NCBI GenBank assembly: GCA_904063045.1
Contig: CAJFCJ010000029.1
Location: forward strand, 62,001 to 126,000
Length of the DNA stretch: 64,000 nt
Direction: 5' to 3'
From: Dimorphilus gyrociliatus
Taxonomy: Eukaryota; Animalia; Annelida
Below the pieces are notes generated by a model. That model was not told the origin of the DNA. It searched no databases and saw nothing but the letters and a program-made list of their open reading frames with translations. How positions within the stretch are numbered: position 1 is the stretch's first letter; each line of letters opens with the position of its first letter. Positions 12,522 to 58,498 of the stretch are shown piece by piece. Both the position numbers and the translations under genes were made by a program.

Positions 12522-12555
12522 ATCCGACTCAACGTCTATTTAAAAACAAAAAAAC

Positions 12556-12571
12556 GGCCCTTTTCAGGGCC
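12556..12571 (+). terminator. Histone 3' stem-loop (H4)
   Basis: GGCCCTTTTCAGGGCC followed by ACCA. Confidence 0.97.
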
Positions 12572-13145: not shown

Positions 13146-13195
13146 GCTACTTCGCCTCTAGTCCTCACTCTGAAATTTTGGTTCATCTGAATTGA

Positions 13196-13618
<423 letters not shown>

Positions 13619-13647
13619 GATGCGATTTGAGATATTTTAAAACAAAA

Positions 13648-13663
13648 GGCCCTTTTAAGGGCC
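13648..13663 (+). terminator. Histone 3' stem-loop (H3)
   Basis: GGCCCTTTTAAGGGCC followed by ACCA. Confidence 0.97.
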
Positions 13664-13796
13664 ACCAAACTTTAACAAAGGTCTTTGATAATTTATAAGC
13701 CGTTTTTAGTTAAGTTGATTTAAGTAATAAATTTTATAAAGAACATTTACATAAGTGAACTGTTTATATCAAGTGCTGTCATATACTCAGTTGCAT

Positions 13797-16700
13797 TTAC
13801 TCATCTGGTTGACAGGGTGCGATTGGTGTTTTTTTATCGACACCTATTCCAGATTCATCGTCTGAATCAGGTGGTAGGGCGCATATTTCCTCTAATTCTT
13901 TTTCTACTTGTGCAACTTCTTCTCTATCCATAATAGATTCAGGTCTTTGTAATTCTGGGTTTTGTGGGGCTTTTTCATTTTCATCGTGTGGTACTTGGTT
14001 AGGTAGAGGTGTATGAGCAGGTCTCGGAGAATGAGTCAAGTTTCTGGGACTATTTACAATCATTGGGGTTTCGCGTATACTGATTGGCGTGACGGAAGTT
14101 TTGGGGGCAGGTGTTGTCCCCTGATAGAATCTATCTCCGATGGACAAGTCAGGCGAAACAGCGAGTCTAAGCATTTCATTAACATGTTTCTTATCATCTT
14201 GCTTTCTCAGTAAGTAGATGAGAGTTACAACCAAAGTAAAAGCTGCTACAAGCGAAAAGAAAACTGCCAGGGCTACAACATGAGCGGATAGGCCGTTATC
14301 AACAGGCATTGGAGGAATTTCAGTGGGTTTTGTATCTTCTAGGAACCCTTTTTGAGCTAGATACGACTGTGACTGTGCAGCCAAGAAGGGATCACCTGTG
14401 GACTCTTTAACTGCTTTTCCTATAGATTCTTGACTCTCAGTTGTTTTAATTATCTTTTCTAAAATGGTGTTAGGGACGTCAAATTTATTTATATCTCTCT
14501 TCTTTCTAGACGTTGTTGACGACGACGATGAATTTTTGTCATCTACAGGTAGAGGTATCTTACAAAGCTCATTATTCCTATCTATCAGAGCAAATATCAT
14601 TACTCTGGCCCCGCTTTCGTTGGGTATATATCTTGGATATGCAGTAGCAGTATGAAAGTCTTTGCCAAAGCAATACTTATCTAAGCTGTTTATAGGGTTA
14701 GGTGGATCTTGAAGGCAACATTCCCTATATTGCTCAGCATTAGCAGTACAATACGATTGAAGCTGTTTGCAGAAGACATTAAAAATTGTTGATTCTATTG
14801 TCTCCCAAAGAATAGGCAATAATGATTTGAAATCAAGTATAACTGATTTATCCGCTTCACTCTTTATAGCATAGCAACTTGGAGACTTGTAGTTGCATAG
14901 AGCATATTGAAGACTCTCTCCAGGACATCTTCTTCCAGGAGATGGAGGTGGTTTGTCGCATTTGCGACTTTTCTGCCTTCTACCATGACAGGCTTTCGAA
15001 CATGTATTCCAAGCAGACCATGTACTCCATTGGCCATCGGTTTGAGAGCAAGCTCTGCCATCTGCGTCTAAGATGTAATATCTATCGCATGTACAGTTGT
15101 AGCCACCTTTTGTGTTCAAGCACGTTGAATGGTCTTTACATTGATGCTTGTGTTCTGGATCGTCCGTTGTGCATTCGTCAATATCAACGCATACATTTCC
15201 ATCGACCAAGAAGCCTCCTTTGCACTCACACCAATCGCTACCATCTTTTTGAACACATAATTGTTCACAAGCATTAGCTACATTCTCATCGAAACATTTG
15301 TCCGCAACGATACACTTTTTGCCATCGCTACCCAACCTAAATCCTTGTCGGCAGAAACATCTGTACGATCCCTGAGTATTTTTACAATCTAATTCACAGC
15401 CGCTAATTGATCTACAAAGAGAGCATATCGAAACATGCACCTTATTCTTATATCATATTTATAATTGTAGGTATTCTTACCTGCTTGAGCATTCGTCTAC
15501 ATCCACACAATCGTCGCCGACTTTCTTATAACCTTTTTGACATTCACACATATAACTGCCTTCAGTATTTATACACATTTCAGTGAGTTTACAAGGACTA
15601 GTCAGGCATTCGTTTATGTCTTTGCAAGTAAACCCGTCTCCTAAATACCCAGGCTTACATCTGCAGTTGTAGGAGCCGGGCGTGTTTGTACAAAGTGCAA
15701 TATCAGTACAACCCCTGGCAGAGGGATCTTCACCAATACATTCGTTCAAATCTATACAATATGTTTCATTTCTTTTTCTGAAGCCTGGTAAACATTTGCA
15801 TGTATAGCTGGATTTTGTGTTTATACACTGAGTTCCTGCTAAACATGTATGCAAATTTTCTGTACATTCGTCTATGTCGATACAACCCGATTGAAAAGAA
15901 TCGTGTCTATAACCATCAGGACATTGACATTCATAAGAACCTTCTTTATTGATACAAGTTGCAAGACCTTTACAAGGGTTGCTTATGCATTCATCTAAGT
16001 CAACACATCCAATACCATCAAAAGTAAAACCCTTATTGCAGATACAAGTGTCGTTACCGTTTCTCTTTGCGCAGACGCCTGAGCTACCGCAAGCTAATTG
16101 GAGGTTGCAAGCGTACGATTCATTGAGAACGCAGGAGATTTTATCTTTGTGTAGATGAAATTCAGGATGACATGTGCACAGGTATGACCCTTGAGTATTC
16201 ATGCAAAAGTGCTTACAAGGGTTATTCGGTAAGAGGCATTCGTTAACATCATGGCAGTTTTTACCATCTTGATGCAGCACGTAGCCAGAAGAGCAAGAGC
16301 ACTCGAAAGAACCGAGTGTGTTTTCGCAGTAGGTTGAGCAGCCACCATTGTTTTCAAGACATTCCTCAACATCGACACAGGTTATACCATCTCCCACAAA
16401 GCCATCCATGCAGGTGCAAGCATAGCTACCGTTCATATTTCTACAGGTAGCCTTTTCCGAGCATTCATTTGCCACAGCGTATCCACATTCGTCAACATCA
16501 TAACAACTTCCATTCCTACCTTCAACAAAACCTTTCGGACATGTGCATATGAAAGAACCTTCAGTATCTTGACACAAATGTTTACAATTATGAATGTTTA
16601 ATTCACATTCATCTATATTTAAGCACATTGTTCCTGATCCAAAAGATTTAAAGCCATCTTTACATCTGCAGCTGTATCTTCCCATTGTATTTTCACAATT

Positions 16701-19700
16701 ACTATTTTCAGGACAATTGAAGCTACCTATTGAGCATTCGTCTATATCTACGCATAGTGTGATATTAGCATTGTCTAACTCCCATCCACTCGGACAAATA
16801 CATTTGTCAGGAATGTCTGTCACTGCTTGACAAAAACCTCCGTCACAGTTCAAAGAGTTACAACTCTTTTTAGGCATACATCTAGTATAGCCATCCAGCA
16901 CAGAGGCTGCTCCGCAACCACAAGTATAGTGAGCTCCATTTGCTGTGCATACGTCATCACATTCTTCATCGTAAGAACAAAGATCTCGTTTTGTACATTC
17001 AACTTCATTCGATGATTGATAACCCCAACCACAATCGCATGTATATCCTCCTAACTTATTAATGCATAGTCGTTCGCAACCACCATTATTTTCCAAGCAT
17101 TCGTCTATATCCTGGCAGGTTTTTTCTTCCGTTAGTGCATAGCCCCTCGGACATTCGCACACATACGATCCGCTTCCATCTTTGCAAAAGCTACCAACAC
17201 CGCAGTCATTAAGTTCACCGTTTAGGCATTCTTTTTTATCTTTGCAGGAGTAGCCATCAGCGTGAAGAAAATAGCCATTATAACAAGAGCAATTATAACT
17301 TTTATCGGTGTTGATACAATTATGCTCGCATTTGGCTCGTAAAGGATTCTCTGAGCTAAGAGAGCATTCATTAAAATCGTAACAATTAGTTGTTGTCGCC
17401 ACTCTAGTTTTAGAACAAGGTGAACACTCGTATTCATTTTGATTGACATCTGTAACATTTTTATCAATACATTTACCATAGCACAGTCGTTCAGTCTCGC
17501 AAACATTTAAATCTTTATCGCATAAATCTCCAAACCAACTTGTTTTACATTGACATTTTGCAAATATCATATTATTTTCATATCTAAGAGAACTAAAATC
17601 GCAAGTACCATGATTTTTACAATTGCAGATAACTAAATTAGGAAACCAAACGAATTTAGCTCCAAAACTATTCGCTATCGTTATCTGTATTCTATTCGGT
17701 TTATTTAGGGTAAATTTCACATTTGCTGAGAAAATTCCACTTGAAACCTTTTGAATTTGTTCAATGCTTATACTACCAGATAGAGCATCTACAATGTTAC
17801 CAGTAAAGCTAATATCTTGTTGATTCTTATCTTCTGCTGTCATTGAGAAGACTTTTTCTTGACCTATGATTACGTTAATCGTTTGCTGAGGTGTAGTAGG
17901 TGGTAAATTTTTGATAATTTCTAGATTTTTCACCATATCTTCTACGAAATTAGCAGTTTCATTTGCGAATTTATCATTATTAGTTACTTTTAAATCGTGT
18001 TGACAATATTTAATGCTAGTTGACTGACGTCCAATACAAATTCCAGTAATTGTTTCAGTATCAATTTCAGAAGCTTGTGGTAAGAATTTTTCCCTAAAGT
18101 ATCTATTGGCTGAGTTGAAGATAAATTCTTTATTGTATACGCTAAATAACGATCGCTTGGTTGCGTATGTTGGTCCAACTAATTTTCTAAGTGACCACTT
18201 TGTAAAAGTATCAGCGGAAATAGGTGATTCGCCCAAAATTCCTTTAAAGTTTTCCACACTATCAGCTGTGGAGAGTAGCATATTTAACCCTTTCTCGCTT
18301 TTTATTATCTTTACCGAACAGTCAGAAGTGTAGGAAATGACAATTGAATATCCGCTGTTAATAACTTCGGCGTTGCCTATACTAACTTCCCCCACATCAA
18401 TTTCTTTGGACTGGCTAACTACTTTTAGAGGTAAATCATTTTGCCAATAAATCTCTATTGCAGCATTATTAAGTTCTTTAATTGCCACTGCAGATATTGA
18501 AGATAGTTTCTCTCCTAAACGGTGGGTTCTAACTTGCATCTCAAATTTAGCTGTTTTCATTATAACAAATTCTCCAAACGCCATCATGGAATATTGTTCA
18601 CCTTTAACATTTCTCAAATGCATACTACCAAACATCAAAGCAGAGATTTCACTTTTATATTTTGACGAAGATAAACCGCCTCTATTAGTTTTGTATTCAT
18701 TGCATTGCCAGCAGTTTGATTTTGAAGGGGTGCAAAGAACCCCACAGCAAGAAGAATATGCATCCTTATCTTTCGAATGATCTGCTGAATTCCATTTATA
18801 TTTGTGCAAAAGCGATTGATATTCGAATTGCAATGATTCGTCAACTTTGCTAAGAAATGCTTCTGATGTTGGAGAATAGCAGCACGTTACTGTTTGACTT
18901 GTCAAAATTTTCCTGAAGCACTTTCTCGATTCTTTTTCAAATGTTAGCGTGAATGATGGTAAAGCTTGGACAACTCTTAAAGATGGTGGACATGAATCTT
19001 TTAATATGTCCTTCCAGCTTTCATCTTTGCCCTTCATTGCAGATAGAGCCTCAAAACATTTAATCTTATTTTCATCCCCAGTAACAGTTGAATTGGGATG
19101 ATTCAAGTTAAAAACGAAAATGCCTTTAGTCATATTTAACTCTCTTTGCAGGGGATTCAAGTCCATTCTATAGACATTATCATTTGTACTTGTCCATGTG
19201 GCTGATAATTTATGTTCAAAGTATTTATCATTTCTTATATAACCCATTCTTGCCGGATATCCCTCATATAAATTTGTTATATCTCTCGAGTTAAATGAAG
19301 TGGGGATCCAATTCATTTCGTTTTCTTTATACAAATATACGCAATAGCTTTCTTTAAAGTCAGTTGCTAGAATAACTTGGAAAGTGTTCTTTTCGATATA
19401 CAGTGACTCGTAAGCGGGTGCTACGGTATCCCATGTAACTTTCAAAAGCCATTTCGGTTTAAAAGATACATTATATGCTGAAAGGACTATATTCTTTATC
19501 TTCTCATATTTAGCATCATTATTATTTTCGTATACATTGTACCATATTTTGTAGAATTTTGATGTGCTTGAAATATCCGACCAGAATGGAGCTAGCAACA
19601 TTCCTATCCCTGTTGGTAGTTTTAGCTCTTTAAAGACTTTCGGGTAAGAAAATGTTGGTTTAACAAGCAATCTCTCATAGGTTAAGGCGATAATTCCGTT

Positions 19701-22700
19701 TTCTGATATGTATACTCCCGAATATATTTTACCATCGTCTAAAGGTATACCTCCAGGAATTTTCAGTGTTTCTGATAATCTTTCTCTGGTAATTCTGCTT
19801 ATCTTTAATAATAATTTGTCTCCTTCCGCTTCGCCGTATTCCATCAATCGTATTTCTTGACAACTTTTAAGTTTGTTCGAAGAATCTTTTATAGGTCTAT
19901 ATTTATTGGGGCAAGAACAAGTATATGAACCCAATGTATTCGTGCATATTGTTGTTTTCGGACAGGGAGATTTTTTACATTCATCAATATCTGTACAATT
20001 TACTCCATCACCTTCAAAGCCACTTTTACAAACACACTTAAAGGATCCTAAAGTATTAAGGCAAAGACTATTTGGCGCTAAACAATCGTGTATCAATGTT
20101 TGAGGAGCCTCTTCTTCTGTACACTCATTTATGTCTCTACATCTTTGAAAAACGCCATTTTTCATTAAGGGTGTGAAACCATATTTACATTCGCATTTAT
20201 AATTCCTTCCTGTGTCTATATAAGAGCACATCCCATTGTCTTGTGTGAAACATGGATTCTTTTCACACCACTTTACTCTATTAGCTATACATGTGCCATT
20301 TCCAGTACAATTTTTATATTCAGCATAGGTTTTCCCTGGCTCTTTTTTACACGGTCTTCCACCGTTCTCTGGAGCCGGATTATTACATATAATTTCCCTT
20401 TTGCTATAGCCCATATCACAATCTGAGGAACATAAAGACCACGCTGTCCACTCGGACCATCCTCCATGAGCTATTTCGCATAAATTTCCTTCGTAGGTAG
20501 AATTAAAGCATTCACACTTAACACCGCTTCCATTTTCAGTACAATTTCCTCTCGAATTACAAGAGGTCGGTGTGCATTCTTTTATATCAGTACAATTAAA
20601 AGGATCTCCTTCAAAGCCAGGTTTACAAACGCAACTGTAGGAGCCAGAATTATCGACACAAGTTGAATTTTCTGTGCAATTATGCAAATTTTCAACACAT
20701 TCGTCTATATTTTCACACGAGTAAGTGTTTGCAGCAGGATTAAAATTCACTCTTCTATAGCCATCCTTACAACCACATTCATACGAGCCAATAGCATCAA
20801 TACATTTAGCATTTTCATGCTTCTGTTTACATACAGATTCGTAGAGAATACATTCATTATCATTTTGACAATCTCTTCCTCTTTGGATGAAACCTTTATT
20901 ACAAGTACATGTATAAGGTGAACCAGAATAGCTTTGTAAATTATAATTGGCATCTGTACAAGTTGAATTTACATGGCATTTGTGTAAATTTTGTGTACAT
21001 TCATTAACGTTTTCACCGCAATCGTATATTACTTGTTCCAAATCCAAGTTATTTATTTCATTCACCTCTGACACAACATTTAAAGCGTCTACAATTATAC
21101 CTACATAGGGTTTGTTCCAACAGAAATCAGATAGCGATCTTATCAATGGAATTTCAACAGATTTTAATTGGATTGTAGTTCGTAAGTTATTTTTAGATGA
21201 AATTTCCATTTGTTGAATTTGTAACGTATGATTTTGCACTATGATTGGATCATCGTTTGCCTGATAAACTTTATCGTTGGAAAAGATTAAACCAAACTTA
21301 AAGTTGACTTCATTGCCACTTTTTTCAGGCAATTTAAAAGAGCCTGTTGTTATTATTACAATCGTCATTTCAATATCAATTTTGTCGCCTGGTCTGATAG
21401 TTTTCTCTTGGATATTTAACAACTTTAAATCTTCTATAGATAAGTCAATTTTATCACCACAAACCGAAGAAATTGGTGCCAAGAAAGCATCCCACTCAAG
21501 CTTGTTATTCTTTTCATTCGTTTCCGCAAGGCTATGTCCCGAGTCTATTTCTATTTCCAATTTCGCAGATCTAACATTGCAAAGAAACAAATGATCTTCT
21601 TCCGTTAGGGTCAAACCTGGAACTTCTCTGGCGATGTAGACTGTAGTTGTTGCGGATACTCCCTTATTTATATCAGTAATCAAGTTTTGACTATTATATG
21701 AAATTTTTTTACGGATGTCTTTATGAGAAATGTAAAATCCGACAGTATATAGTAGAGGATCTGTTTGTCCACTAGGAAAGTTTCCCCAGCCTCCACTTCC
21801 ACTTATTTCAATAAAAGTTGTAATATTAAAACCCATATCGTGGTTGAAGGTATAATTATGACTGTATACATTATCTAACCACTTGAATGCTATTGGTTGT
21901 AAATCTCTCCAATGGTCTTGACAGTCAACTGCTATTTTAAATTCCATATGATTGTTGTTCATATAACATTCAGGTATTGATGGTGCAATAACTTCTAAAC
22001 CTAATATAAAATGTCCACTTCCTAGATAGGGACACACTATATTCATGTTAATATCTCCAACCCATTTAGGAGTTTCTACAGTTGTTCCCTGCTTAAAAGT
22101 GTTTAGGTATCTTCCATTTGGAAGCTTACTTGACCAAGAACTAGGAGTTACGTAGTATCTTTGTGAATTGACTTCGTCTTTTCTTATGTAAGCTCTCATT
22201 TCAAAGCTCGCCATATGCTTGAGTGGAACAATATCTTTATCGAATATGTTTTTGACTGTTGCAACAACGCTGATAGGTGAACCGTCTTTATAATACACGT
22301 CTTCCTTTTCCAGTTGAATATCAACCAAATAAAGAACATCACTGTGGCACTTAATATCAATCTCTATTGGATAGACGTTATTACCTTCGTCAAATTCTTC
22401 GATTATATTATTTTCATCCAGTACTATAAGGAGATAAGCTGGCCCACAAATTACTAATTTTTCTATTTGTAAATGTAAAGTTAGATTAACTTCTGTTGAT
22501 TTATCAAATTTTTTCATTAGTTTTGTTATATTATATTCATTTTTGACCTTATAACTTTCTTTTTCGTCAAATTTACTTGTTTTTGATAAAAAGCTATTAA
22601 TTTTCATATCTTTAGATTCAAGATCTAATATAGATATTCCAGTTACGTTAAGATTTACAGTTATTTCCGCAATTATTGTATGCGGTATAGAAAATTTATA

Positions 22701-25700
22701 GGTTGATAATAATGCATTATTAATATTTAAATCACTCTTATCAGTAATACATTTTACCATATTTGTAACGTTCAAGTAACGAGCATGGTTATCCCAGACA
22801 CCGTCCTTTAAAGATATTGGTAGACCGAATTCTGTTTGTGCAAATAGAATTGGCTGATCACAAGTTCCAAAGGGCAATTGTATAATAGCTTCTCCTTCCA
22901 GTTTAACAGTAGTTAAATGAATTAGAGAACCCATAAGAGTTTCTCTAAGTTTGTAATCCAAATATTTGATGTTAACCTTAGAATCATAGTCTTCCTTTAG
23001 ATTCTTTCCATTTGACATGTACATAGTTAGATAAAAATTCTCTTTTCCCTCTCCGGAAGATTTAACATCGTATGAGTAGTGAATGTTTTGCATAGTACCA
23101 CTAAACCAGATCTTTGTGTCGATTCCGCCGTATAAATGGGTAAAAGGTGGAAGAGGTTTAATTGTAAAACCGCCCATAGAGAACCAATCATTTGGACAGT
23201 AGACAGTTATTTTATTCGTAAATGTATTATTAGAACTATCCGGATCAATAGCACCTTCATAGCTGCTATTAATTCGAACGATTAGATAAGCAGTTCCGCA
23301 GTAATAATTTAAATTTGGAAATTTTAGAGTATTAAGGAGAAGTCCAGATCCGCTTAACGGGAATATATCGGGCGTTGAAGAGGATATGCCTTTTTGAAGT
23401 GTTGTTTTTTGTACAGTAGAATAGACGGTTGGTATCTGGTCGTCATATTCATCAATTGCTGAATCAATACTGATAAAAAATTCCAAATATATATAAGGTT
23501 CATCTCTATTTGGAATAGAACCAGTAGCGGATTTCTTTACTCCTATTTCCAAATTGTAACTGTTTATCGAATTTGCTGATATGTACGCTTTATTCTGACC
23601 ATTCGATTCTGTTAAACTAAACTTGGTTATATACAGATCCACTTGATTTGGGTATTTACAAATCAGTAGTTTTTTATCAACTGGAAATCTTGCAACATCA
23701 TTTTCAGTGATGTTAGATTTATAAGATCCCACCTGAATTAGTTGAATAAAAATAGTTGGATTTTTTGCTCTTTTGCATGATTCTACACTTTTTATAAGAA
23801 CATTTCCCTTAAGGTATCTATTAAATATTAGAGATCCGTACGCAACAGTATTCTTATATATATAGACTTCTCCTTCGTTATTTCTTATATCCATTTCTTG
23901 ATCTTGATCTTTATCAAATATCTCGTCCTCTGAAAAGTATTCTTTAAACGTAAAATGACCTTCCAGTGATGACTGAAGGGCGGGACCATCATTCTCAACT
24001 GAAAGAGACATAGCATGTTGAATGTATAATCCGGGATACCATTCCGATGGAAGATCTATAACTTCAAACGATCCTATAGATAAACCTTCATTTTCAGGGC
24101 AATAGATAAATATCGGTTTTATAAATGTTCCTCTTCTTACACTGTTATATTTTGAGGAGATTTCAACGGCCAATAAAGAAGATTCCATACAAATGATATT
24201 TTCAAATGGTAAAGTAACTTTATTTAATGAATTTAAATCTAAATTCATTATTGAAATACCAGAAGGATTTGAATATCTTGAATTAAGCGTGTTATTACTA
24301 TTCCCACTTGAGTATTTAATCGGAATTGTAAAGTTATCTTTGATCAAGGATAAAGATATCATTAGATTATCGGTTGAAGTTTTACCAGCGAGTATTAAAT
24401 TAGCGATAACAGATATATTGTATTCTTTAGTAGCTTCGACTATCTCGGGAAAATTTACAGATTTGATATCAGTTCCTATTCCAACTGGACAATTTTTTGT
24501 AATAATCTGATACGAATATTGATTATCATCCAAGTTGGCATCATAATATGCTGTTTCTATTTTAATGATTATATAACTCTGTGTACTATGGCATATATTT
24601 ATTAATGTTTCGTTGTCTAAAGCCGATGATTTTTCAACATTATATCGGTACAACATACCATCTTTAACCATAGAAATTCCTTTCGACTTTAATTTCAAAT
24701 TTAATTTAGTTTCTTTGCCAGAGATTGTATTAGTTGTAGAAATATAGAAATTTTGTTCTATACTTTCTTCCATAAATATATATTTACTTGTAAATCGATA
24801 AAAAATATCTATCATTGTAGTTTTACTGTTCAGATTAATAGTTTGTGGTGAAATTGTTAAGCTTTCAACCTTTATAGATGAATCTTCCTCTTCTACATCA
24901 AAATTAATAATAGATATATCATTCTCCTCAATTCCCCAATTTGCTCCTTTAACTTCGTCGCTATTTCCTTTCAGAAGTTTTAATCCTAGGAATTTTGTTC
25001 TAACATCATTAATAGTGATCATAAGGTTAGCTTCCATTGGCAATGAATTAGCTGTTGTAAAATTCCATTGTAAAGCTGTTGACGGTGATATATTCTCTTC
25101 ATTACCAGAAATATAAAATGGATCTATTAAAGATGGTTGAATACTTCCTACAGGTTTTAATTGACTGTCTAGGGGAATCAATTTTATATTGAAATGTACT
25201 GGGAAAGCAAAAGTTGAGCTGGAAGCCGTCGATAACGGACAAGGAGAAGTATTACAATTGATTTTGAAATTAAGTTTTCTGGTCTTCTGCTGATTCGCAA
25301 ACTGCATTGTGTTATCTAATTCTATATCTTGAATTTCAAATAAATCAATTCCACAATTGATTTTAATAGGATCAAATCTTATGTTATTTTCATAGTTGCT
25401 CTCCGTAAGTTCTCTTCCACTTTTCAGGACTGTTACTATATAAGAATTACCGCATAAGGTCTTATTTATATTAGAAGGAAGAGTGAGTGAAGAGGAAAAT
25501 GTCTCTGTCAGTGGAGAACTTCCATAATGGAGCATCTGAAGTTTATCAAAAGGTTTATCGTATGGTAGACTATTCGTTAGAGGATAATCAATCAGTTCAT
25601 CAAATTTTACATCTTTACTTATCCAATGGTTTATGATAATATTTTTGAAATATATACTTTGTCCAGTTTGCAATTTTATCTCATAGTTGATATTTAAACT

Positions 25701-36473: not shown

Positions 36474-36483
36474 AATTCAAGTT

Positions 36484-36492
36484 AAAATGGCG
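36484..36492. promoter_or_regulatory. YY1-like AAAATGGCG within the 117-bp bidirectional promoter of the giant pair
   Basis: Match to the YY1 core consensus; motif inference only. Confidence 0.4.
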
Positions 36493-36590
36493 ATTGTACC
36501 ATTTACAGACAGCATGAATAAGTTAAGGCTCTAGCAACGACGTATGGGCGCTCTCTATATTGTGAAAATTATTCAGCCATTCAAGCCATC

Positions 36591-45500: not shown

Positions 45501-48500
45501 TGAAATCATCTTGCATGATAGGATCGTCGGATGAAAATATAAAGTTTAACATTTATGTTTTAAACTCTACTAGTGGTTGGTCTCACTTACAAACTATTGA
45601 CAAAAACTCTACAGTTTATCCTCATCTGGGCGTCACCTTTAAACGTCAAGGTTATGAGAGGACATTTCACGTTAAAAGCAAAGCAAAATTACCAATGGAT
45701 ACTTGTAATAATAGTATTGCAAGACTGAAAATTCAATTAGACTTTGGAAGTGGTTTACCAGGAAAGATGGATAATGTTACAGAGAATAATAATATTTATA
45801 CACAAGTTGAATGCGCATCGTCCAATAGAGACTTAATAGCAACGAATTTTAAGATATTGGATGAAAATCCTTTAAAAAGTAGGCGAATTAAATACCAAGT
45901 TGATATAAATTTAGAAGGAGAAAAGCTTGATGCTATCGATCCATTAGGCATAGCTCCGCTATTCAATATAGGTCTTTATGTATCAAGAGATAGACTTTTA
46001 TCAAAAGATGATATACGAATGGACTATATTATGTCAGAATGTGCAGCCAGGACAATAAATAAAGGAATTTCGAACGAAACTATAACTGTTACGGATGCAA
46101 CTGATGGTGCAATTTTACCTGAATCAGTTTGCGGTTCCACAAATATTATCATAAAAATAGACAGCGATGACCGATACAACGAACTGAATAAGGTTAACAA
46201 TGTTTTATATAAAAAAGTTGATATAAATTGTGAGGGAAATTTATTCGAATTGATAGATGTCATATCTGATCAATTCAATGAACCACTTCATCAATTTACT
46301 TCCGGAATGAGCTATTCGTCGTGGAAATTTGATGTTATTTTAAGAACTAATAACTACGATATCTATTCTCCTTATCGGGAAACTGGAGAACCTCTTTTAA
46401 CCATTATATCAGCTTTTTCAGCTGATTCGGAGTTTTCCGACGACGATATTCAGATCCCAGTCACTATGAGTGATATATCAAAACGACTTGTATCGTTTGG
46501 TCTGTTACCAAATACGGAACTTAGATTGCCATTAAATGAACTTTCTAATATTAATATACCAGCTGATATTTGTGCCTCAATTAATTATTTACTTATTGGT
46601 ATATTGCCCTCTAAAAATCAACTAATACTAGAGAAGAAGCTTGATAACAATTTCCATTATTACCCGATTAAGAAATTATGCAATCCTGGCCAGAAAGTTA
46701 TGGCAGATACTATAAGTAAACCTGTATCAATCTCAAACCTTGATCAGCTATACGAATTTGCTGCTATAGTTAGAACATCGTTCGCTTCAGCTACTACGTT
46801 GAAATACGGTTGGTGGATATCCCACGATGATAAACTGCAAGATAATTTAGATTTTAATCTGGAGTATGGAAAAGTATCTGCAATTGGAGATATACTTTTC
46901 ACGAAGAACGTTACAGTACCTGGTCGAATTGCTCCAAAATTTTGCGGAAAAGTTTACATCCTTTTCCAGGTTGATCCTCATGATGAAATAATTGAGGTAA
47001 GAGAGGATAATAATGTTGCTAGCAAATTGATAAAAGTTAGCTGCAGTGGTGATTTAATAACTTTAAGGGATGTTAAATTGTCCTGGATCAGTAATGAACT
47101 ACTTGGAAGTGCTTCAAATAGTTTAACTATAAATGGAACTATTGAATGCACCGGTCAAAGTAAATGTCCTAACGCACCTCTTTCTGGAGATCATTACAAG
47201 ATAAAACTGCACGCTTACGATTCAAGCTTTAATATTCTTTCATCTCTCAGTCCTTCTTTCTTGCAATCGTCGATGCTTCAACCTTCTGATCTACTTACTA
47301 AAGATTTTTCTACTGGTACCATCGTTTATAGTTTTACCGCCAACAGTAAATTTCAACTCAGCAATCCGTCAATAAGCGATCTTGTGGAATATATTGGAGT
47401 TAATCTGGAAACTGATCAAACAACTGTCGGACCATCAGATGCTAAATTACGCTTAATACCTTTTAAATATTATAAAGAAGTTGGTTCAGTAGATTTTAGC
47501 ATAGATACTTTTACAGTTGCACCACAGAGTGGTGACGTCACAAAGGTAATCAATATGAATTTAATTGTTGGAGTTGCAACCTCTATGTGGAAAGACGAAA
47601 TTACCGAGCCCTTATTTGGTTACAGTCTCTACCTTTCACTTGATTCCGTTATTACTAGTGATGATATTAACATTAATTATGTCCCAAGTGAGGCTATAAT
47701 TAAGAATTTAGTAACATCTTCACCCACAGTAAATCTTGCTGATCCTTCAATTAAACTTAATACTGACATAATTCAGAGCTTTTGCGGAAAAGAAGTCTAT
47801 TTCGGTGTTATCATAGACCCGGCAAACAGAATTAAAGAATCGGATGAAACTAATAACTTTGCATCTGTTAAAATTACAATAACGTCGTGCGATAATGGAG
47901 TTACGTCTTATGTCAAAAGCATAAATTATCTTCCCTCCTGGGTAGTATCATATCAAGCCATAACAGCAAATTTTCTCGTAGAACATGTTCTAACAGGAAC
48001 GTTAGATATTCCGGCTGCTGTTGATGGTAAAGTTAATTATAAGCTAAACTGTGAATTGTTAGAGGATATTTGGTCATCAAAACATAAATTTAGCTTTAAA
48101 ATTGACACTTCGTCAATAAGTCAAACAAAAGAGCAAATTACTTCCGGTGCAAATATAGATAATGGTATTGCTGTTTTAGTTCAACACTCTTTTCCCTTTA
48201 CATTTAATATTGCCCCAAACTATTCAATTTGCGGTAGATTATGGATGATCAAGTGGCAAGTTGAATTTCTTACGAATACCCTAAGCTCAAAAAAAGTTGT
48301 TCTACCTCCTTATTATGATAACATATTCATATCATGCCCTCAAGGGGATTTGTTAGTTCTTGAGAGTATCGATATTAAACATACCCCGCCACTGTGGTGG
48401 TCTGATTCAACAAACTATTTTAAATTTATAGCCAAAGTACGAAATATTGGAACAAACGCGGCCGATGCAATAGCCGAATCGTCTGGATCAAGAAAATATA

Positions 48501-51500
48501 GTTTCATGATTGAACAATATTTTTCAATAGATGATTCTCTAGATACGCAACAAGACACAAAACAAGATGTTCGCCTCCCGGGAGATTATATACACGATTA
48601 TGAGAAATCAGTAGAACCTAAAGAAGAAGTTGTAACCCCAGTTCTAACCGGATATTTGAAGGATTTAAGTCGAGATCTATGTAAAAGTGCTCAATTAGAA
48701 ACTTCTAAACCAACTATTTTTTGGGTTATGAAACCGGCGTCTGCAACTTATTCAACATTTACTTTTAACGACGTCTTATCAGCGCCTTTAGATAAATCAA
48801 TATTTACTTGTGAACCCGATAATATTGATTTAGCAGTCACGTCATTAAAAATTGGCGGCTTAAATACAAAAATAAGACAAAGTATTGCAACTAACTATAG
48901 AGTAGAGATTTCTCAATCAAAGACTGCAGAAGCAGAAATCAAACGATCAGACTATTCGGGAAATGAATTAAGTTATAGATATGATTTCTATCTATCGAAT
49001 GATGATAAATTTTCAAAGGACGATTTAATACTACCAATTGAATATTCTAAGGAACAAAAGGTAACACTACAGCAAGGAATCTCCTCGGCCACTCCATCGG
49101 TAATACCGATAGATGGTTATAATTTTGTTGTTCCTAAAGATAGAGCCTTTTTTTGCGGAAAATATAACTATGTGATTGTCTATGTAAAAGACTTAAAGAA
49201 TCCTATTGAGCTTGATCCAAACCTTCATAATAATTGGAAAGCAACTCAAATAGAAATCGAGTGCCAAGAAGACCTTTTGACATTTGACTCCTTACAAATG
49301 ACGCCGGTTTGGCCTCAAAAAATGCTTTATAGAGATGCTTGGGCAAAGTTTCAATTGTCTGCTACTATAACTAGTTTAAAAGATATACCAAGTTCCGTTG
49401 ATGAGCGTGAATTGTTTACATTTAAAATATATCTCTCTGAAGATGGCATCTTAGATACATCTAACGACCCCGAACTGGAAATGAAGCTCGAAGATGATAT
49501 TTTTGGCATACGCAGAAAAGGTTGGCAAGCCATGGAAACAAGGAGCTTCCGGGAAACTGTCAGCATTAAGGCTTCTCAAGCTATTTGCACATTCAGACCG
49601 CAATTTCTTTTCGTCTATCTTGTGAAAAACGCTCAAATTACCATACAAGAATATGTCACAGAGAATAATGCACAGTATATTCCCTTTAGCCTAAACTGCC
49701 AGGTGAAACGTATCGAATTGAGTGCCAAATCATTTACTTTAGTTAATCCACAAGCAGTTTACACAACGGGAAGCGAAACTAAATATACATTATCTGTTTC
49801 TATTCATCTCGATGGAGGAGCAATTCTCGAACCTTTATTTAAATTGAGAAAAGGATTTAATATTAAATTCTATCTATCGACCAATACCAGCTGGGAGCAT
49901 TCAGATTATCCATTAGACTATACAATGACGGATGATAATTATGATAAATTAAAAGCTAGCTATAAAGTATCAACTGATTTATCATTCGATGCCGACGATA
50001 CTCATAAACTAAAAATTCCTGTCACTTTACCACCAAGATTCTGTGGATCAGTTTATCTTATTGTTTTTGTAGATAATGAGAATCAAATTGAAGAAGCAGA
50101 TGAGTCAAACAATTTCAAAGAAATTCCTATTTTTATTGATTGTATGGGTGATGAATTCGAGACCAGAAATTGGAAAATATGGCTACAACAGGTTTATTAC
50201 GGTGCACCCGGATTAATTAAAGTAGAAACTGATGTTAAATTGAAAACTGCAAATGTAAATAAGACAAACTTCGATATTACTGTGTGGGTAAGGGAAAATA
50301 AAGAGTCTGTTTGGTTAGAAGTCACCCCAAGCGATTGGGAAAGCGTTAACACAGATAATTACGATACTAAATCTATAAAGGGAAATCTTGACTTTAGATC
50401 TGCCTGCAAAGCAGATGTTGATAAGATAACGAACGGGTTAAAAGAAGTGAAAATTGAAGCTAGCTACAATTTGTCCTTGTCGAATTGCGTAGGCAAAAAT
50501 AATCGGGCCTATAGGCTGGCAAACGTCGATTGCTCTGGCGATTATATAGACTTGTCAATCGACGACTTTTCTTTAAGCAGTACTTTAAATTTTGGATATA
50601 ATCCCTTCATTCTTGTATTTAAAGCAGATTTGAGCTCTCCTTCGGTTGGTTGGGATGCCATGTCGGCTTTATCAAGACCTAAATTTAAATATAGGTTTAA
50701 AGTTGAATCAGTTTTAGAATGGATTTATTTAAGGCATGTTGCCGACACAAGACTAGATAAGAAAAGACTAGTAACTGAAGAGAGATACATAAAATACAAT
50801 GCAACAAAACATAACTCGATAATTAACGAAGCTACTAAAGAGACAAGATTAATGAATGTTTCCGATAATAATTTACAATTTAATCATGATGAACTATTAC
50901 TATTGTGCCACGCTATTTCGTCAAAGCTTTCAGTTCACGTTGACTCAGAAGAAGATATTAATGAAAGCAGCGAATCGAATAATATTGGTTCTTTAAATGT
51001 AGTTGTTAATTCATCACATTGCTTTGATGGTCCTCCTGCGAAGGACGTAACCGTTAGGGCATGGAAAATAAAGGCTACGAATGACGTTATGAAAGTTAAT
51101 ACGAACTATAATTACGACTTAAAAATACTATTAATTCTCGTAAAACCTTTACATCTTGACGGATTAAACGGAACCGACTCCACACACATGAATATTCAAT
51201 TTTTCATAACCGATGGAAAAAGTTCAGTGGATATCCCAGTCACTTTGTCTTCTTCGCAATTAGACGCTTTAAAAGCTTGGTACTGGAACATTTCCATAAT
51301 TGACATGTCCGATTCGAATCTTAAAATTCCATTGAATAATGAAACTTACAGATGGTGTTGGAAACCGGTTCAGATAGGAATAAAGCTTGACAGCTCAAAT
51401 AAACAAATTGAAGTAAATGAAGATAACAATGAGGGTTTTTACAGTGTCATCTTAGACTGCGGATCTAAAATAAACGAATGCAATTTAGGACTCCATAACT

Positions 51501-54500
51501 GCGATGTTAATGCCAAATGTTCAGACTTACCCAAGTTCTTATATTCAAATACTCGACAGGATGGTTTTCAATGTTCATGTAAACCCGGATTTGAAGGTAA
51601 TGGAACATCTTGCTATAACATTGATGATTGCAAAATGGCCAAAGACGACTGTGTAACAGATGTATCAGTCTGTGTTGATACAATTGGTAGTTATAAGTGT
51701 TCATGTAAAGATGGATATGCAGCGGATTTGGACGGAAAGTGTCAAAATAAGGACGAGTGTACTTTAAAAACTCATAATTGTCATGTAAAGGCTACCTGCG
51801 AGGACACTATAGGCTCTTTTAAATGTACTTGTAACCCGGGATACGAAGGCGACGGAGTAACTTGTACAGGTATGTTTTTCTTTTATTTTTTTAACAAAAG
51901 TAGTATTAACTAATGTATATTTGACAATCTCTATAGATATTGACGAATGTTCCAAGTTGTCAAATAAATGTTCTGGCAAAGGTACTTGTATCAATGGCGC
52001 AAATATGTATATTTGCGAATGTATAGATCATTACTCTGGAGATAATTGTGAAGTAGCAAATGGAAATTGGGGATTGTGGTCTGCTTGGTCGACTTGTTCA
52101 AGCAAGTGTAGTAGCGGAGTTGAACTACGAAGTAGGAAGTGTAATTCTCCAGAACCTAAAAATGGTGGTTCTTTGTGTGCGCCTTTAAATGGCACAGGTT
52201 CAATTGAACTTAGAAATTGCTCTAATTCTCCTTGTCAAAGTACTTTTAAATGGTGTGAAAAAGATCCTTGTGGGGAAGAATCAGGTGGAATATGTAGCTA
52301 TACAGACAATGGGCGCTTGTTTCAATGCTCGTGTCGTATTGGGTACGTTCCAAAGTACAATGCCACAGGAGCATTTATGCACTGTGAAGATCTAAATGAA
52401 TGTAATCAACCAGGAACTTGCCATCCTTTGGCCATCTGCCAAAACACAAAAGGTTCCTACAGTTGCACTTGTAAAGATGGTTTTGAAGGAGATGGAACTT
52501 CCTGTGAAGACATTGATGAATGTTCCAGGGGTACTCACGGATGCGATTCTTCTTTAGAAGTCTGTGAGAACGTAGGAGGAACTCGTAATTGCAATTGTAA
52601 AGATGGTTTTAAAAAGTCTCCAAAGGGTGTATGTATAGAAGACAGGCTATTACCTTATGGAATAGGGGTTGGTGATAAATTATTAACAGAAATTAGCCCT
52701 ATAACAAATGAAACTATATCGAAATTATTTAAAATCCCGAACGGCGTAAGCGTAAGCGACGGACGATTAATGGATTCTTTATATGTTACCGAAAATGGAA
52801 TTATAGTATTAACAAATGATAAAAGTTATCAGGACTTGAACACGTTCAGACATCCGCTTAAATTTACCGATATACCTGATGGTTATGGAATTATAGCCCC
52901 ATTTTGGGCTGATGTCAGAACAGACTTAGAAAAGAGTAAAATATATGTCCAATCTTATACAGATACCACTTCATCAGTTTTTGAGAAGGCAACGAAAAAG
53001 TTGAGTAAGGTTTTAGATAAAAGCATTAGCGGCTTAAAGTACATTTTTGTAGCTACTTGGGAGAACGTCATGCCTCATTATCTAACTCAAAGTGATCAAT
53101 TAAACACGTTCCAGGCTGCCCTCTTAACGGACTACAACCACGCCTATGTATTATTTATGTACGAGAGCATGAAGTGGAACCCAGTTTATCCTACAAAGCA
53201 ATTAGCAAGCAAAGGATATCCGGTTAGGGTTGGTTTTGGATTGAAACCTGTAGGAGGTAGCAAAAAAGTACAAGAAGATGAAAATTCAGCCAAGTGGTCA
53301 TCTGATGAATCTCTACCAAATGCCTACAGGCTAGATAAAAGGAAAGGATATATTGCTTATAGCTTAGACGATAACGATTTAACATACAAAAGTCCGAGGC
53401 GCCATTGTAGCGAATGGTATCAAAAAGAGGGTAGCATATCAAGTTGGGATAACGGAGTAGTTGACTCTTGTCCAGCGCATATAAGTCAAGTTGAAATAGA
53501 TAAAAGATTCCAAACTGACAATCAATGTTATAAATCTTTGTTTACTATTGGCCCATGGATTCGTTGTTGTTATTGGCCAGGCAATGGAGCACTTAAAACA
53601 TTAAAGAATACAAATAATGGTATAGTTTTTTCGACATCATCCAATCCAATAGGATATGTCTCTAGATATACTGAAAATTCAGTAAAGACAAAAGAAAATT
53701 ACTTAAAAGATGTAGCTCCTTTCGAAAGTTGTTGCCTAAATAGCAATGATCCTAGCCACTTTTGTAAAATGTATTTGGCAAAAAGGCCAATGTCAGATTA
53801 CACCAAATATGATAAGCCTCAAGTCGGAGCAATTTTCGGAATGAGTCACTTAAGAACATTGGATGGAAAGTATCTTACTTTTACAAACTTTGGAGAATAC
53901 GTTCTTTTGAAATCAATACCTACATCCCCAAATAAAGTGGAAATTCAGGTCAGAATGGAAGATATTGCAGGAGTAGACGGAAGAAAAACGGTTGTCTGTA
54001 CAGGCATTGCAGTACAAGTAAACGGAGGAACAAATATTCAAGTAATAACATATTGCCCTATTTATTTCTAATTATTATTATAATATGACTAATTAATTTC
54101 TTTTTAAAGGCATATCTACAGTCCGAATCGGAAATTATAATGTACGTCAACAATGAGGTGCGAACGTCAACCTCGACAACCACTAGCGATGTCATTATAA
54201 AAGGAAACTCACCCGAATATTATATAATCTTCTCAATAGGATTATGGATAAGGGTCACGGCTTCTCAGAAAAAACTTCTTTGCGTTGTCTACGCTGGAAA
54301 ATCTCATGGAAAAGGAGACTTTGAAGGCTTATTAGGATTGTTTGACTTAAACCCGAAAAACGAATTTAAAGCCTCCACAGGAGGTCAATACTCGGAGAAC
54401 CCTGATATTTCAGACATCGAAGCTTTTGTCAGATCGTGGAACTTGAGGGTAGTTTATGGCATATCCGATGAAGGGACGAGTGCTAATACGCAATCTCTTT

Positions 54501-57500
54501 TCACACAATACGATGCTAATAAATATAAGAATGCAAACGAATTCTACAATCTTGAATATTCTCCACCACTGTTCAATGAACAACAATATAATGATGTAGA
54601 AAGAAGTTCATGTATCTATAAGGCAGATCCGTTACTCTTTTGCATGCATGACTTAAAAGTAACCAATAACAAAAACTATGGCACAAAGACTTTAACGGAA
54701 TATGAATATTTGGAAAAAACATCGTTTCTATTTGCCTCCTCTATTCCAGAGGTAGCGGAAATTCCTGATATAAAATTATCAGTAGGACAGAAATGGACAT
54801 ATGATTTAGAGATCATGGACAAAAATGGCGATCCGGTATCAGTAATTGCGTCTGTTGACGCTGCTAGTAAGAATAATCGAGACATATCCATTAAAACTGA
54901 ACCGGTTAATAATACTATTGGTAAATACATATCGAGTATCGAATGGATTCCAGTTGCTAAGGAGAAAGCCATTGTCAATCTACTTGTAAATAATACGGAT
55001 GGAATTATGGTATTAATAAGACCCAGAGTAATTTTGTGCTCTTGTGAACATGGTAATTGTAGGGACACCTTTATGGAACCATTCACTGATACTTTTACCT
55101 TCTCTGTATGCAAATGTACAATTGGGTACGATGGTAAAAGATGCGACATCGATAAGTTAGGTTGTGCATGGAAAGACTGCTACGGACATTGCACAGATTT
55201 AACAACAGCACAAGCTATAGCAAAGGGCAAAGAGTTTGAATGTGATAAATGTCCTTTAGATATGTTGGGCAACGGACACAATTGCTATGATGTAAATGAG
55301 TGTACAGGGTTAAATCAATGTCAACAGTTGTGTATCAACACACCCGGATCGTATGTTTGTTCTTGCCGGGTAGGGTATCAACTAAAACAAGATAGATTTT
55401 CTTGCGAAGATATTCCAGAATGCGGGACAAATTTAGCAGCAAAATGCGATATAAAATATGGAAAATGCATCGAAGAGCCCGGCTCATTTAGTTGCCGTTG
55501 TGATAGCGGATTTCAACTAGACAAAAAAGGAACTTGTGTAGATATTGACGAGTGTTTAACTTCTAATGGAGATTGCGAAAGACACTGTATTAATACATTC
55601 GGTAGCTACGAATGTTCGTGCGGTTTAGGTTATAAAACAGATCCGGTAGACCAACGTCGATGTATAGAGATTAATGAATGCGAGTATGATAACGAATGCG
55701 ATCAAATCTGCACAAAAAAAATAGGCTTTTATAGTTGTTCCTGTAGAATTGGTTTTCGTTTGGACTCTGATGGAAAATCGTGTGAACCATTAAATCCATG
55801 TACAAGTTTAACATGCGGTGCCAACGCTATTTGTGCCATAGAAAGTGGAGATGAAAAATGCCTTTGTAAAAGTGGATTTGTTATGGATCCTACTAATGCT
55901 ACAAAGTGTATTGATGTGAACGAGTGTTCTGCAGGATTCCATCAGTGTAATCTTTACACGTCTAGTTGTAATAATTCAATTAGTAGCTATTTTTGTACTT
56001 GCAACAAAGGTTATAAACCATCGGAGAACAATCCTAGAGACTGCATTGATATCGATGAATGTTCAACAGATCCTGGTTGCCAACATATCTGCAAAAATAT
56101 GCCAGGATCTTTCGCTTGCTTATGTAAAGAAGGTTATATTTTAGGGGCAGACGGAAAGTCTTGTATTGATATAGACGAATGTGGTAATGGCGTCGAAAAT
56201 AAATGTGATTTAGACGCCACTTGTACAAACACTGACGGAAGTTACAAATGCGATTGTAAACAAGGTTTTGACGGTTCGGGATCAATCTGTATAGATAGAA
56301 ACGAATGCTTAGATAGCAACGGGGGCTGTCAAGTATCGTGTGTAAATACCTACGGATCCTATGAATGTGCATGTGTTTCTGGTTTTAAAGAAGACGCAAG
56401 TGATCCAAAGAAATGTTTAGACGTTGACGAATGTACTAATGATATGCATGATTGTCAACACGAATGCGTTAATACTCCTGGGTCTTTCGTTTGTCAATGT
56501 AGGATAAACTTTAAACTTGGTCAGGATGGGAAGTCGTGCGTACCAACCGTCCCTACTTGTGACTATCAATGTGGCGGTGGTCAATGTATTAAAGTCGGGC
56601 CATTAGAAACTTGTATTTGCAACTATGGTTATGATAAGACAAGTGCCGACCTATCAGAATGCGTTAATATCAATGAATGTGTTTTAGATATCCACAAATG
56701 TAATACTGAAAAGAAAGCATTGTGTGAAGATAAAAGCAGTGGTTATAATTGTATTTGCCCGAGTGGCTACAAACTTTCTTACGATGGTATCACTTGCGAT
56801 ATTATTGATAAATGTACAGATAAAGAAAATCCACATAATTGCGATAAATTGACGACAGTTTGTAAGAGAGTTGAAACGTCTTTTGAGTGCGTTTGCCGTA
56901 ACGGTTTTGTACCTACTGAGGATAAGGGGAAATGTAAAGATGTCGACGAGTGCCTGGAAGATAAGCACAAGTGCGCGTTGACCGCCAACTGTGTAAATAC
57001 GGCTGGATCGTTTAAGTGTCGATGTAAACCTGGCTATGAGGGAGACGGAAGAACATGTTCCGATATAAATGAATGCTTAATATCAAATATATGTCAGTTA
57101 AACGAAATATGCCAGAATAGTCAAGGAAGTTATAAATGCATTTGTAAGAAAGGCTATAAGAGGAAATTTAGCGATTCCAGTAGTGACGGTGAATGCGTCG
57201 ACATAAACGAATGTTTGTCGCCTCGATTGAATGAATGCAAATCACCAGAAGCCTATTGTGTTAATACTGAAGGAAGTTCAGTTTGTCGTTGCATAAACGG
57301 AGCGAGATTAAACTCTGACGGTAAATCCTGTACAATTATAGACAAATGTGATGATTCGAAAAATTGTAAACAATTGTGCATAAAGCACAACGGAACCGAT
57401 ACATGCATATGTAAATATCCCCTTGATGAACTTTGTAATGACGTAAATGAATGCTCTAAAAGTGCTGACGTTTGTGACACAAGAAATTCTAAATGCGTGA

Positions 57501-58498
57501 ACAAAAAACCAGGTTTCAGTTGTAATTGTATTGATCCATGGCTACCCGATGCAGACGGCCTAGGCTGCTCCGAAACGAATGGGGCGTGGGGCGAATGGCA
57601 AAGTTGGACTCATTGCTCAAAGACTTGTGATGGCCAAAGAATGAGAACGAGAGCTTGCAATAGTCCTTCTCCAGTGGGTGTTGGAAGAAAATGCCCTGGA
57701 AATGTTTCTCAATATCAGTTCTGTAATGGTGGAAGATGTTCCGTAAATGAACCCCAGCTAAAGAATGCTGCTATGATTAAATGGAGCTCTCTCCCACTAG
57801 AATTATATCATACAGTCGAAGAACCCCTATTTAGAACCATAGCTAAAACAGTGAACTTGTTTTGCAAGCAATCGAATACTACTTTCGAACAATGCTGCTT
57901 AACAAGTATCAGTTTAGAAAATATAGCCACTGATTTGAGCTTTGTAAAATTTACCGATTTTCAAGCTGCATCATCCTATCCTAGGCAGTTTGGACAGAAT
58001 GGTACAAAAGTAATTGTGTTTGGAACAACAGCAACCAATCTAGAGTTTTGTAAGCCTAAAGTAACGAAAAGGAATGCGGATCCATCAACGCACCGAGATA
58101 TCCCTCAGCAAGTTCTAATCAACTCTTTTAATGAGCCTAACTTTGAAACCGAACTGAGGGATCAGGCGAGGAGAAAGAGCTTGGACAGTCTAATTAGTAA
58201 TGTTTTAAATTTTCAAGTGTCAGAAGCTGTCAATGAAGACGTTAAGCCAACTGTAACACCAACCGTTGGGACAAAGAAGTCGGAAAGCTTTCCTAGTTGG
58301 GCAATAGCTGTTATAGTAATAGGCTCCTTGTTAATTTTAACTTGCTTCGCTTGCGTTATGTTTAAAGCATGTAAAATGGACAACAAAGGGTCGAGTCAAG
58401 GTAGAGTTTCTCCATCTGAAAATATAAATTTGGACGAAGGTATTAGAAGAACACCAAGATTAAATGAATATAAGGACGTCACTGGAACTCTCAGTTAA
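36591..58498 (+). CDS. Giant type-I membrane protein B (~7,000 aa est.), paralog of A with the same domain order
   Basis: Exons: 36591-36660 (signal peptide MIRWRMESCFIIFCCLHLVFGVP), 36724-37161, 37241-37651, 37861-40089, 40163-41163, ~41227-41391, ~41456-51868 (~10.4 kb), 51938-~54041, ~54111-58498. NIDO: IAPFWADV, ATW, NTFQAALLTD. AMOP: CSEWY..CP..CCY. VWD: FGMSHLRTLDG. Many DIDEC EGFs, two TSP1 domains, TM WAIAVIVIGSLLILTCFACVMF. Confidence 0.88.

Follow-up and report, generated by a model that had tools for sequence, protein, structure and literature searches.

In this work, we analyzed a stretch of 64,000 nucleotides of the annelid Dimorphilus gyrociliatus (contig CAJFCJ010000029.1, positions 62,001 to 126,000; hereafter the window), focusing on two giant genes, gene A on the minus strand and gene B on the plus strand, which diverge from start codons separated by a 117-bp spacer. 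We propose that A and B probably encode co-regulated giant type I membrane proteins, that they belong to a bilaterian family without a name in which an array of CARDB domains is followed by a MUC4-like half, and that the spacer acts as their shared promoter. What is observed directly is the anatomy of the sequences, the paralogy of the two genes, the conservation of the spacer and, in three annelid genomes, the divergent arrangement. The main interest lies in the undescribed bilaterian CARDB-EGF family and in the conserved 117-bp bidirectional element; giant modular membrane proteins and bidirectional pairs of paralogs are known.

Structure of the divergent gene pair

The window is AT-rich (~28-40 % guanine-cytosine content) and eukaryotic in character; its introns are very short and its open exons giant. 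The start codons lie at 36473 (minus strand, gene A) and 36591 (plus strand, gene B), leaving 117 bp between them (36474-36590), and both first exons encode signal-like peptides. The initial annotation had given exactly these positions and had described ~7,000-aa paralogs of identical domain order filling about 70 % of the window. Both statements were borne out, the proteins measuring ~6,978 and ~6,950-7,150 amino acids (aa) and the two genes together spanning 13797-58498, i.e. 69.8 % of the window.

Gene A (13797..36473, minus strand; stop codon 13797-13799) corresponds to the public D. gyrociliatus model DgyrCDS14008 completed by a distal signal exon. In a protein search, the minus-strand gene was 100 % identical to this model (P0001, 6,964 aa), which maps onto 35502..13800 at 98-100 % identity. 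Gene B (36591..58498, plus strand; stop codon 58496-58498) was reconstructed as an approximate splice model whose open reading frame (ORF) pieces are collinear with A. The giant genes contain single open exons of 4,097 and 3,529 codons.

Exon 1 of A (36413..36473, minus strand) comprises 20 codons plus 1 base, ends with a phase 1 GT donor (36412-36411) and encodes a hydrophobic leader of 20 residues. It is followed by an intron of 920 nt (35493..36412), long for this genome, and by exon 2, starting at 35492. Exon 1 of B (36591..36660, plus strand) comprises 23 codons plus 1 base, with a leader of 23 residues and a phase 1 GT donor as well; intron 1 (36661-36723) separates it from exon 2, which starts at 36724. 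The openings of the two second exons are homologous and have the motif IYQDI in common. Since signal exons with phase 1 donors are joined to homologous exons in both genes, the inverted duplication would have taken in the signal exon and the intron.

As publicly annotated, DgyrCDS14008 begins with a mini-exon of 19 nt (ATG at 35562, region 35493-35580) and is devoid of a signal peptide. This ATG is absent in a second dinophilid species (hereafter species 2), which has kept the distal A signal exon, its first 8 residues and its donor; the mini-exon start looks like a gene-prediction artefact. The exon at 36413-36473 was accepted because a C-terminal membrane anchor and EGF/TSP1 modules require a signal peptide. 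The public model, from which the signal exon was missing, is corrected in this way.

Transcript evidence came from one 2017 transcriptome (run X1), which holds fragments of both genes at low and similar depth (3.4-6.6 for A, 4.9-8.0 for B). One of its contigs (record 6, 904 nt) skips 37161-37239 and fixes one intron of B, and the depth in the bin 36540-36736 is that expected if the remaining 53 letters of the contig sit on B exon 1. The genome paper (PMC7854359) lists DgyrG14009 and DgyrG14007 as stage-regulated; as DgyrG numbers could not be matched to DgyrCDS14008, these two entries were left out of the analysis.

Intron 1 of A contains low-complexity A/T runs and (TA)n/(TG)n tracts at ~36050-36342, with a word depth of 4,000-9,000 in all runs and high-depth repeats at about 36146-36342. 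Contigs of the source-like DNA run and of the species 2 assembly break at this stretch. Relative to the window, contigs of run X3 covering 35508-36201 show dense G>A changes and no others, a pattern typical of methylation libraries prepared by bisulfite or enzymatic conversion and not of real variation.

Conservation of the 117-bp spacer

The genome of D. gyrociliatus is compact (73.8 Mb, median intron of 66 bp, short intergenic regions) and the species uses canonical promoters, with no trans-splicing and no operons (PMC7854359). As messengers are not trans-spliced in this species, the promoters and 5' untranslated regions (UTRs) of both genes must lie in the spacer or overlap it. The spacer (36474..36590), which carries a AAAATGGCG core at 36484-36492, is therefore presumed to hold a shared bidirectional promoter and both 5' UTRs.

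Species 2 (Logan assembly SRR23372228) provided two contigs, with an A ortholog 58 % identical over 4,055 aa and a B ortholog 67 % identical over 3,472 aa. One of them (L002) bears an A-type signal exon on the minus strand (1083-1143, ATG at 1143) and a B-type start codon on the plus strand (ATG at 1261), again 117 bp apart. The D. gyrociliatus spacer and its counterpart (L002 1144-1260) are identical at 98 of the 117 positions (84 %), with zero indels. By comparison, identity is 51 % in B intron 1 and ~61 % in A intron 1 as far as this is alignable to species 2, with gaps; in the big exons it amounts to 44-50 % at third and 79-84 % at second codon positions. On both sides, a stretch of perfect identity begins inside the signal exon and continues into the spacer; one such run of 43 bases (36450-36492) covers the A start codon and the AAAATGGCG block. 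The tiny shared spacer singled out by the initial annotation is thus under constraint, having kept its length and 84 % of its bases although the species 2 proteins are only 58-67 % identical to those of D. gyrociliatus. What is special here would be the conservation of the spacer and not the spacing per se, and, judging from the sequences, a shared regulation of A and B appears well supported. The other species 2 contig (L001) contains ~200 bp of A intron 1 before exon 2; its first 20 positions (1-20) are an Illumina adapter-like string, i.e. an assembly artefact.

We infer that the AAAATGGCG block is YY1/Pho-like. Within the window, 4 copies of the motif are present vs 0.45 expected, and it may be a recurrent promoter motif in the D. 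gyrociliatus genome. An exact copy lies at 63499-63507 (minus strand), upstream of minus-strand multi-exon ORFs resembling membrane proteins at ~59-62 kb. The GC-rich core of the spacer was also considered as CTCF-like, and fitted the consensus poorly by eye, no scan having been made. An Rfam search of the whole window returned four histone stem-loops only, none of them in the spacer, and a repeat search of the spacer gave no meaningful palindrome or direct repeat.

The region between the two start codons is a very small bidirectional regulatory unit, validated by evolution in two deeply diverged species. It should be easy to dissect in an animal with canonical promoters and without trans-splicing.

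Domain architecture of A and B

Collinearity of the two proteins begins at the first domain and extends up to the membrane anchor, with 24-37 % identity. Their Pfam domains follow the same order, i.e. a CARDB array (~4,600 aa), EGF, TSP1, calcium-binding EGF, NIDO and an AMOP/VWD region, and then an array of calcium-binding EGF/cEGF modules, TSP1, ~190 aa without an assigned family, a hydrophobic helix and a tail. Module counts are equal as well: iterated jackhmmer detected 21 CARDB-type domains with confidence in each protein, and the EGF array that follows VWD contains 122 cysteines in each.

The CARDB-type array extends over 21018..35492 in A (minus strand; P0001 ~8-4581) and over 36724..51460 in B (plus strand). 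Matches to the Pfam family CARDB (PF07705) reached 30.5 and 27.7 bits in A and 101.8 bits in B, for a cut-off of 22.7. The length of this N-terminal region would fit ~36 domains of ~125 aa, and jackhmmer applied to the gaps between detected repeats revealed no second repeat type. When 20 homologs of A 3735-4138 were aligned, three successive units of ~130 aa became apparent; every unit contains two conserved cysteines and, towards its end, an acidic/Asn-rich motif. AlphaFold2, run on this alignment, returned three beta-sandwiches with a mean predicted local distance difference test (pLDDT) value of 83. The best matches of the three-domain model among AlphaFold DB clusters were prokaryotic CARDB, APHP and DUF11 repeat proteins (E 3e-15 to 1e-8). 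A Foldseek search of the PDB with the same model returned generic Ig-like arrays only (integrin legs, TRAPPII, complement), with low template modelling (TM) scores, and was uninformative. Together, the Pfam and fold matches identify the repeats as CARDB-family domains. The initial annotation had given ~30 Ig-like and ~30 EGF modules; the label Ig-like was therefore abandoned, and 27 C-x-C EGF motifs were counted in each protein.

NIDO is located at 19104..19715 in A (minus strand; P0001 5016-5219; 86-90 bits) and at 52773-53270 in B (plus strand; 92-93 bits); scores for A, B and the species 2 A ortholog ranged from 86 to 93 bits. In B, AMOP follows at ~53562-53774 (28.9-30.4 bits, cut-off 25), and a putative VWD is indicated by two sub-threshold halves on either side of an intron (53832-54068 and 54137-54382). 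The corresponding stretch of A (18243..19103, minus strand; P0001 5220-5506) aligns with B and both species 2 orthologs with conserved cysteines (alignment A3). The profile built from this alignment gave a weak match to the VWD of MUC5AC (E 0.0036) and to that of VWF, and Owenia homologs likewise show weak VWD. The motif GDPH, the autocatalytic cleavage site in the VWD of MUC4, was found nowhere in A or B, the aligned position at the start of VWD reading GSMH in A and GMSH in B.

An EGF array of ~20 calcium-binding modules follows, at 15012..18242 in A (minus strand; Pfam EGF_CA, cEGF and FXa_inhibition) and at 54386..57739 in B (plus strand; including TSP1 at 57590-57739). Next come a membrane-adjacent domain, delimited from alignments (A, 14295..14876, minus strand, P0001 6606-6799; B, 57737-58285, plus strand), and a transmembrane helix with a cytoplasmic tail, both placed by a hydropathy scan. 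In A, helix (P0001 6800-6829) and tail (135 aa) occupy 13800..14294 on the minus strand; in B, the helix lies at 58286-58372 on the plus strand and a 41-aa tail reaches 58495. A single hydrophobic segment of this kind is present in each protein. In both genes, one signal peptide stands at the start and one transmembrane helix at the end. Mucin-type Pro/Thr/Ser tandem repeats are absent: the N-terminal 4,600 aa consist of folded CARDB-type repeats, and Ser-rich linkers are short and confined to the vicinity of the membrane.

From this anatomy, A and B are ancient paralogs, predicted to be type I transmembrane proteins. The matrix or cuticle filament of the initial annotation has accordingly been revised to membrane proteins whose cytoplasmic tails are conserved and differ from one another. 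Its estimate of an ectodomain exceeding 100 nm is plausible, given ~36 beta-sandwiches and ~27 EGF modules. With typical dimensions of ~4 nm for a beta-sandwich and 2.5-3 nm for an EGF module, the extended length would be ~200 nm.

Between species, the tails and the ~190-aa region preceding the membrane show a far higher conservation than the full-length proteins. Arg-Asp is invariant in this region, and basic clusters close to it (RKKR or KRKR for A, KVTKR for B) lie in a loop that AlphaFold leaves disordered. Cleavage by a proprotein convertase near the membrane may reasonably be proposed from these clusters. One of the five structural models of the membrane-adjacent domain reached a pLDDT of 72, with a beta-alpha-beta...beta-alpha-beta layout. 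The region matched no Pfam family, and Protein Atlas provided no lead (best score 0.56).

Homologs in other animals

An exhaustive HMMER search was performed with A 3022-4138 against 1.84 billion representative proteins, and only 28 matches were obtained. Those from named organisms belong to Owenia fusiformis and Branchiostoma and are all labelled 'unnamed' or 'uncharacterized'. The others are either bacterial CARDB proteins or unannotated ORFs (~400 aa) located on long contigs of eukaryotic appearance. Homologous exons of ~400 aa are carried by GCA_013332715.1 and GCA_029979725.1. Word-based searches for full-length or N-terminal homologs returned only the query or the species 2 piece.

In O. 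fusiformis, the minus strand carries one homolog at ~4.038-4.059 Mb (CAH1772454). On the plus strand of the same chromosome, from ~4.107 Mb, a series of fragments collinear with B residue by residue ends in a model of >3,023 aa with NIDO, VWD and EGF. The junction between the two was reached through fragment CAH1772460 (L010). The plus-strand gene has a clear signal peptide, with its start codon at L010:2316, and the minus-strand fragment (A residue ~241 onward) starts at L010:10001, weaker exon homology being traceable back to ~9281. The Owenia pair is thus also arranged head to head, with starts less than ~7.7 kb apart.

In amphioxus (Branchiostoma hybrid assembly CM033049.1; L009 1-53695), three consecutive abutting models on the same strand (3,220, 1,505 and 2,713 aa) contain, in order, CARDB and WSC, CARDB, and EGF_CA/TSP1/NIDO/EGF. 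They are probably one split homolog of ~7,400 aa. The WSC domain of its N-terminal model is absent from the annelid proteins. The existence of this homolog indicates that the architecture is older than annelids. Owenia and amphioxus homologs alike are fragmented in current annotations.

A phylogenetic tree was constructed from a collinear region of ~800 aa in A, B, species 2 A and B, Owenia 1 and 2 and the amphioxus homolog. Its deep nodes were unresolved, the approximately unbiased (AU) test rejecting neither a grouping of Owenia 1 with Owenia 2 (p 0.11) nor one of Owenia 2 with B (p 0.16). A common origin of the Owenia and Dimorphilus pairs is the more economical reading.

Comparison with known protein families

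SUSD2, whose insect relative is Mesh, is related to MUC4. The C-terminal half of A and B has the layout of these proteins, i.e. type I topology, NIDO-AMOP with a putative VWD and then EGF, a single transmembrane helix and a short tail (MUC4 domain description: PMC5354666, PMC8660890). They also share a very long extended N-terminal region, which projects from the epithelial surface in MUC4/SUSD2. Unlike in MUC4, this region is made of ~36 folded CARDB beta-sandwiches in place of the Pro/Thr/Ser mucin repeat; A and B further differ by their ~27 EGF modules (vs 2-3), the addition of TSP1 and the replacement of GDPH by GSMH/GMSH. Sequence similarity to MUC4/SUSD2 exists at the domain level only.

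The N-terminal half resembles prokaryotic CARDB/APHP/DUF11 surface proteins, with Pfam scores of up to 101.8 bits, fold matches down to 3e-15 and the acidic/Asn motif. In contrast to prokaryotic CARDB proteins, A and B have introns, a signal peptide, EGF/TSP1/NIDO and a eukaryotic-type anchor, and the animal repeats each contain two conserved cysteines. The initial annotation knew of no named protein with this architecture, which holds insofar as all homologs found are unnamed; yet the C-terminal half follows the known NIDO-AMOP-VWD-EGF-transmembrane design, and CARDB repeats are known too. The pair thus defines a family of ~7,000-aa animal surface proteins without a database name, present in at least annelids and amphioxus. 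This family joins a CARDB array, typical of prokaryotes and hardly known in animals, to the MUC4-type design, and bears on how the modules of large apical coats and adhesion systems were assembled in early animals.

Hemicentin, fibrillin and fibulin similarly have long beta-sandwich arrays followed by TSP1 and calcium-binding EGF arrays, but they are secreted, without a membrane anchor. Hemicentin, fibrillin, zonadhesin and SVEP1 were the sole named matches in word-based searches, through their EGF arrays only (7-17 % of the query). Pfam scans of all A and B pieces contained no VWA, I-set Ig, G2F, TB or fibulin C-terminal module, and these four were rejected as families because their defining modules are absent. 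As in PCDH15 with its MAD12, a small alpha/beta domain stands between the last extracellular repeat and the membrane (TM score 0.36, probability 0.2-0.5); however, A and B have no cadherin repeats, and the fold match, obtained with an uncertain model, falls short of significance.

For gene arrangement, the closest parallel is collagen IV alpha1/alpha2, i.e. divergent genes for extracellular paralogs with a short spacer, in an arrangement kept across species. A and B are unrelated to collagen, and their 117 bp separate start codons, not transcription start sites. Heteromer formation is the reason given for the head-to-head arrangement of collagen IV.

Proposed function and alternative explanations

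According to our proposal, an inverted duplication including the signal exon and its phase 1 intron would have given rise to A and B, which would have remained head to head ever since. The spacer, as constrained as second codon positions, would act as a single shared bidirectional promoter/5' UTR unit, switching both genes on in the same cells. Their products would stand on the epithelial surface as long stalks stiffened by calcium (~200 nm if fully extended) and contribute to an apical coat or adhesion layer; by analogy with MUC4/SUSD2, this seems the most likely role. A proprotein convertase may cut them near the membrane, leaving an ectodomain and a stub that would signal or traffic through its tail. 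Co-expression, cleavage, localisation and any binding between A and B are what we infer.

Several observations weigh against this proposal. Regarding the locus itself, no X1 read covers A exon 1, and part of the conservation of the spacer may merely reflect two overlapping core promoters. Regarding the antiquity of the arrangement, the tree does not settle whether the Owenia and Dimorphilus pairs stem from one duplication or from separate ones, and one amphioxus homolog (P0035 gene) has a PRMT gene and no paralog on its 5' side. Regarding the architecture, A has no Pfam match to AMOP or VWD, and the VWD halves of B, ordered as they are (profile positions 3-69 and 76-155), score 18-19 and 17 bits for a cut-off of 22.9. 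In the membrane-adjacent domain, four of the five models reached a pLDDT of only ~35, and a Foldseek search of the PDB gave no significant match, the weak ones being ferredoxin-like and including PCDH15 MAD12.

Two narrower explanations, both sub-cases of the proposal above and about equally likely, differ in whether the two proteins work together. According to the first, which we hold to be possible but not favored, A and B are functionally independent paralogs, acting singly or as homomers and possibly in different tissues; their head-to-head position is a relic of an inverted duplication, and the spacer is conserved simply for the two core promoters and 5' UTRs packed into it. The low identity (24-37 %) and the unrelated tails suggest an old functional divergence, the gene density of this compact genome (PMC7854359) would account for the proximity, and the tree allows separate duplications in Owenia and in dinophilids. 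Against a mere relic, the length of the spacer has been exactly kept and its identity is at the level of second codon positions and reaches into both signal exons. Moreover, the arrangement is kept in the non-compact genome of Owenia, where proximity was not forced.

According to the second, which we regard as rather unlikely on present evidence, A and B are obligate partners in one hetero-oligomeric surface filament, the shared promoter equalizing their amounts as in collagen IV. Such a partnership is consistent with two dinophilid species having retained both paralogs at equal module counts (27 EGF motifs, 122 cysteines), with the conserved length and sequence of the spacer and with the divergent pair of Owenia; the tails differ and each is conserved, as in heterodimeric receptors. 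It is harder to reconcile with the transmembrane helices, in which no charged residues were found, with the lack of an obvious unpaired-cysteine pattern and with at least one amphioxus homolog that is not paired head to head, and the co-expression it demands rests on one low-depth transcriptome. A bolder version, which we consider doubtful, holds that an ancient bilaterian CARDB family has been kept in annelids as a pair predating the split of Owenia from other annelids (likely >500 million years) and that its products form an obligate heteromeric filament with stoichiometry set by one promoter. If true, the D. gyrociliatus 117-bp promoter could serve as a minimal natural bidirectional promoter.

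Finally, the fragmented public models of the Owenia and amphioxus homologs and the fragmentary transcript evidence could suggest that the giant genes are annotation artefacts, i.e. several shorter genes or pseudogene debris read as one, but this is very improbable in view of the open exons of 4,097 and 3,529 codons, the end-to-end collinearity of A, B and both species 2 orthologs with a codon-position conservation typical of purifying selection, and the single signal peptide and single transmembrane helix at the two ends of each gene.

Neighboring genes

A histone quartet occupies 9488-13687, with H2A on the minus strand (9558-9935) and H2B (10456-10842), H4 (~12210-12518) and H3 (~13205-13615) on the plus strand. 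Each of these genes has a 3' stem-loop (Rfam RF00032). That of H3 ends at 13687, ~110 bp from the stop codon of the convergent gene A (13797), which leaves room only for a very short 3' UTR of gene A unless this UTR runs into the histone 3' end. Closer to the start of the window, according to ORF translations only, plus-strand exons at 7625-9289 resemble serine hydroxymethyltransferase, and two divergent genes with hydrophobic ORF pieces are present at 1411-4265 (within 1-4300).

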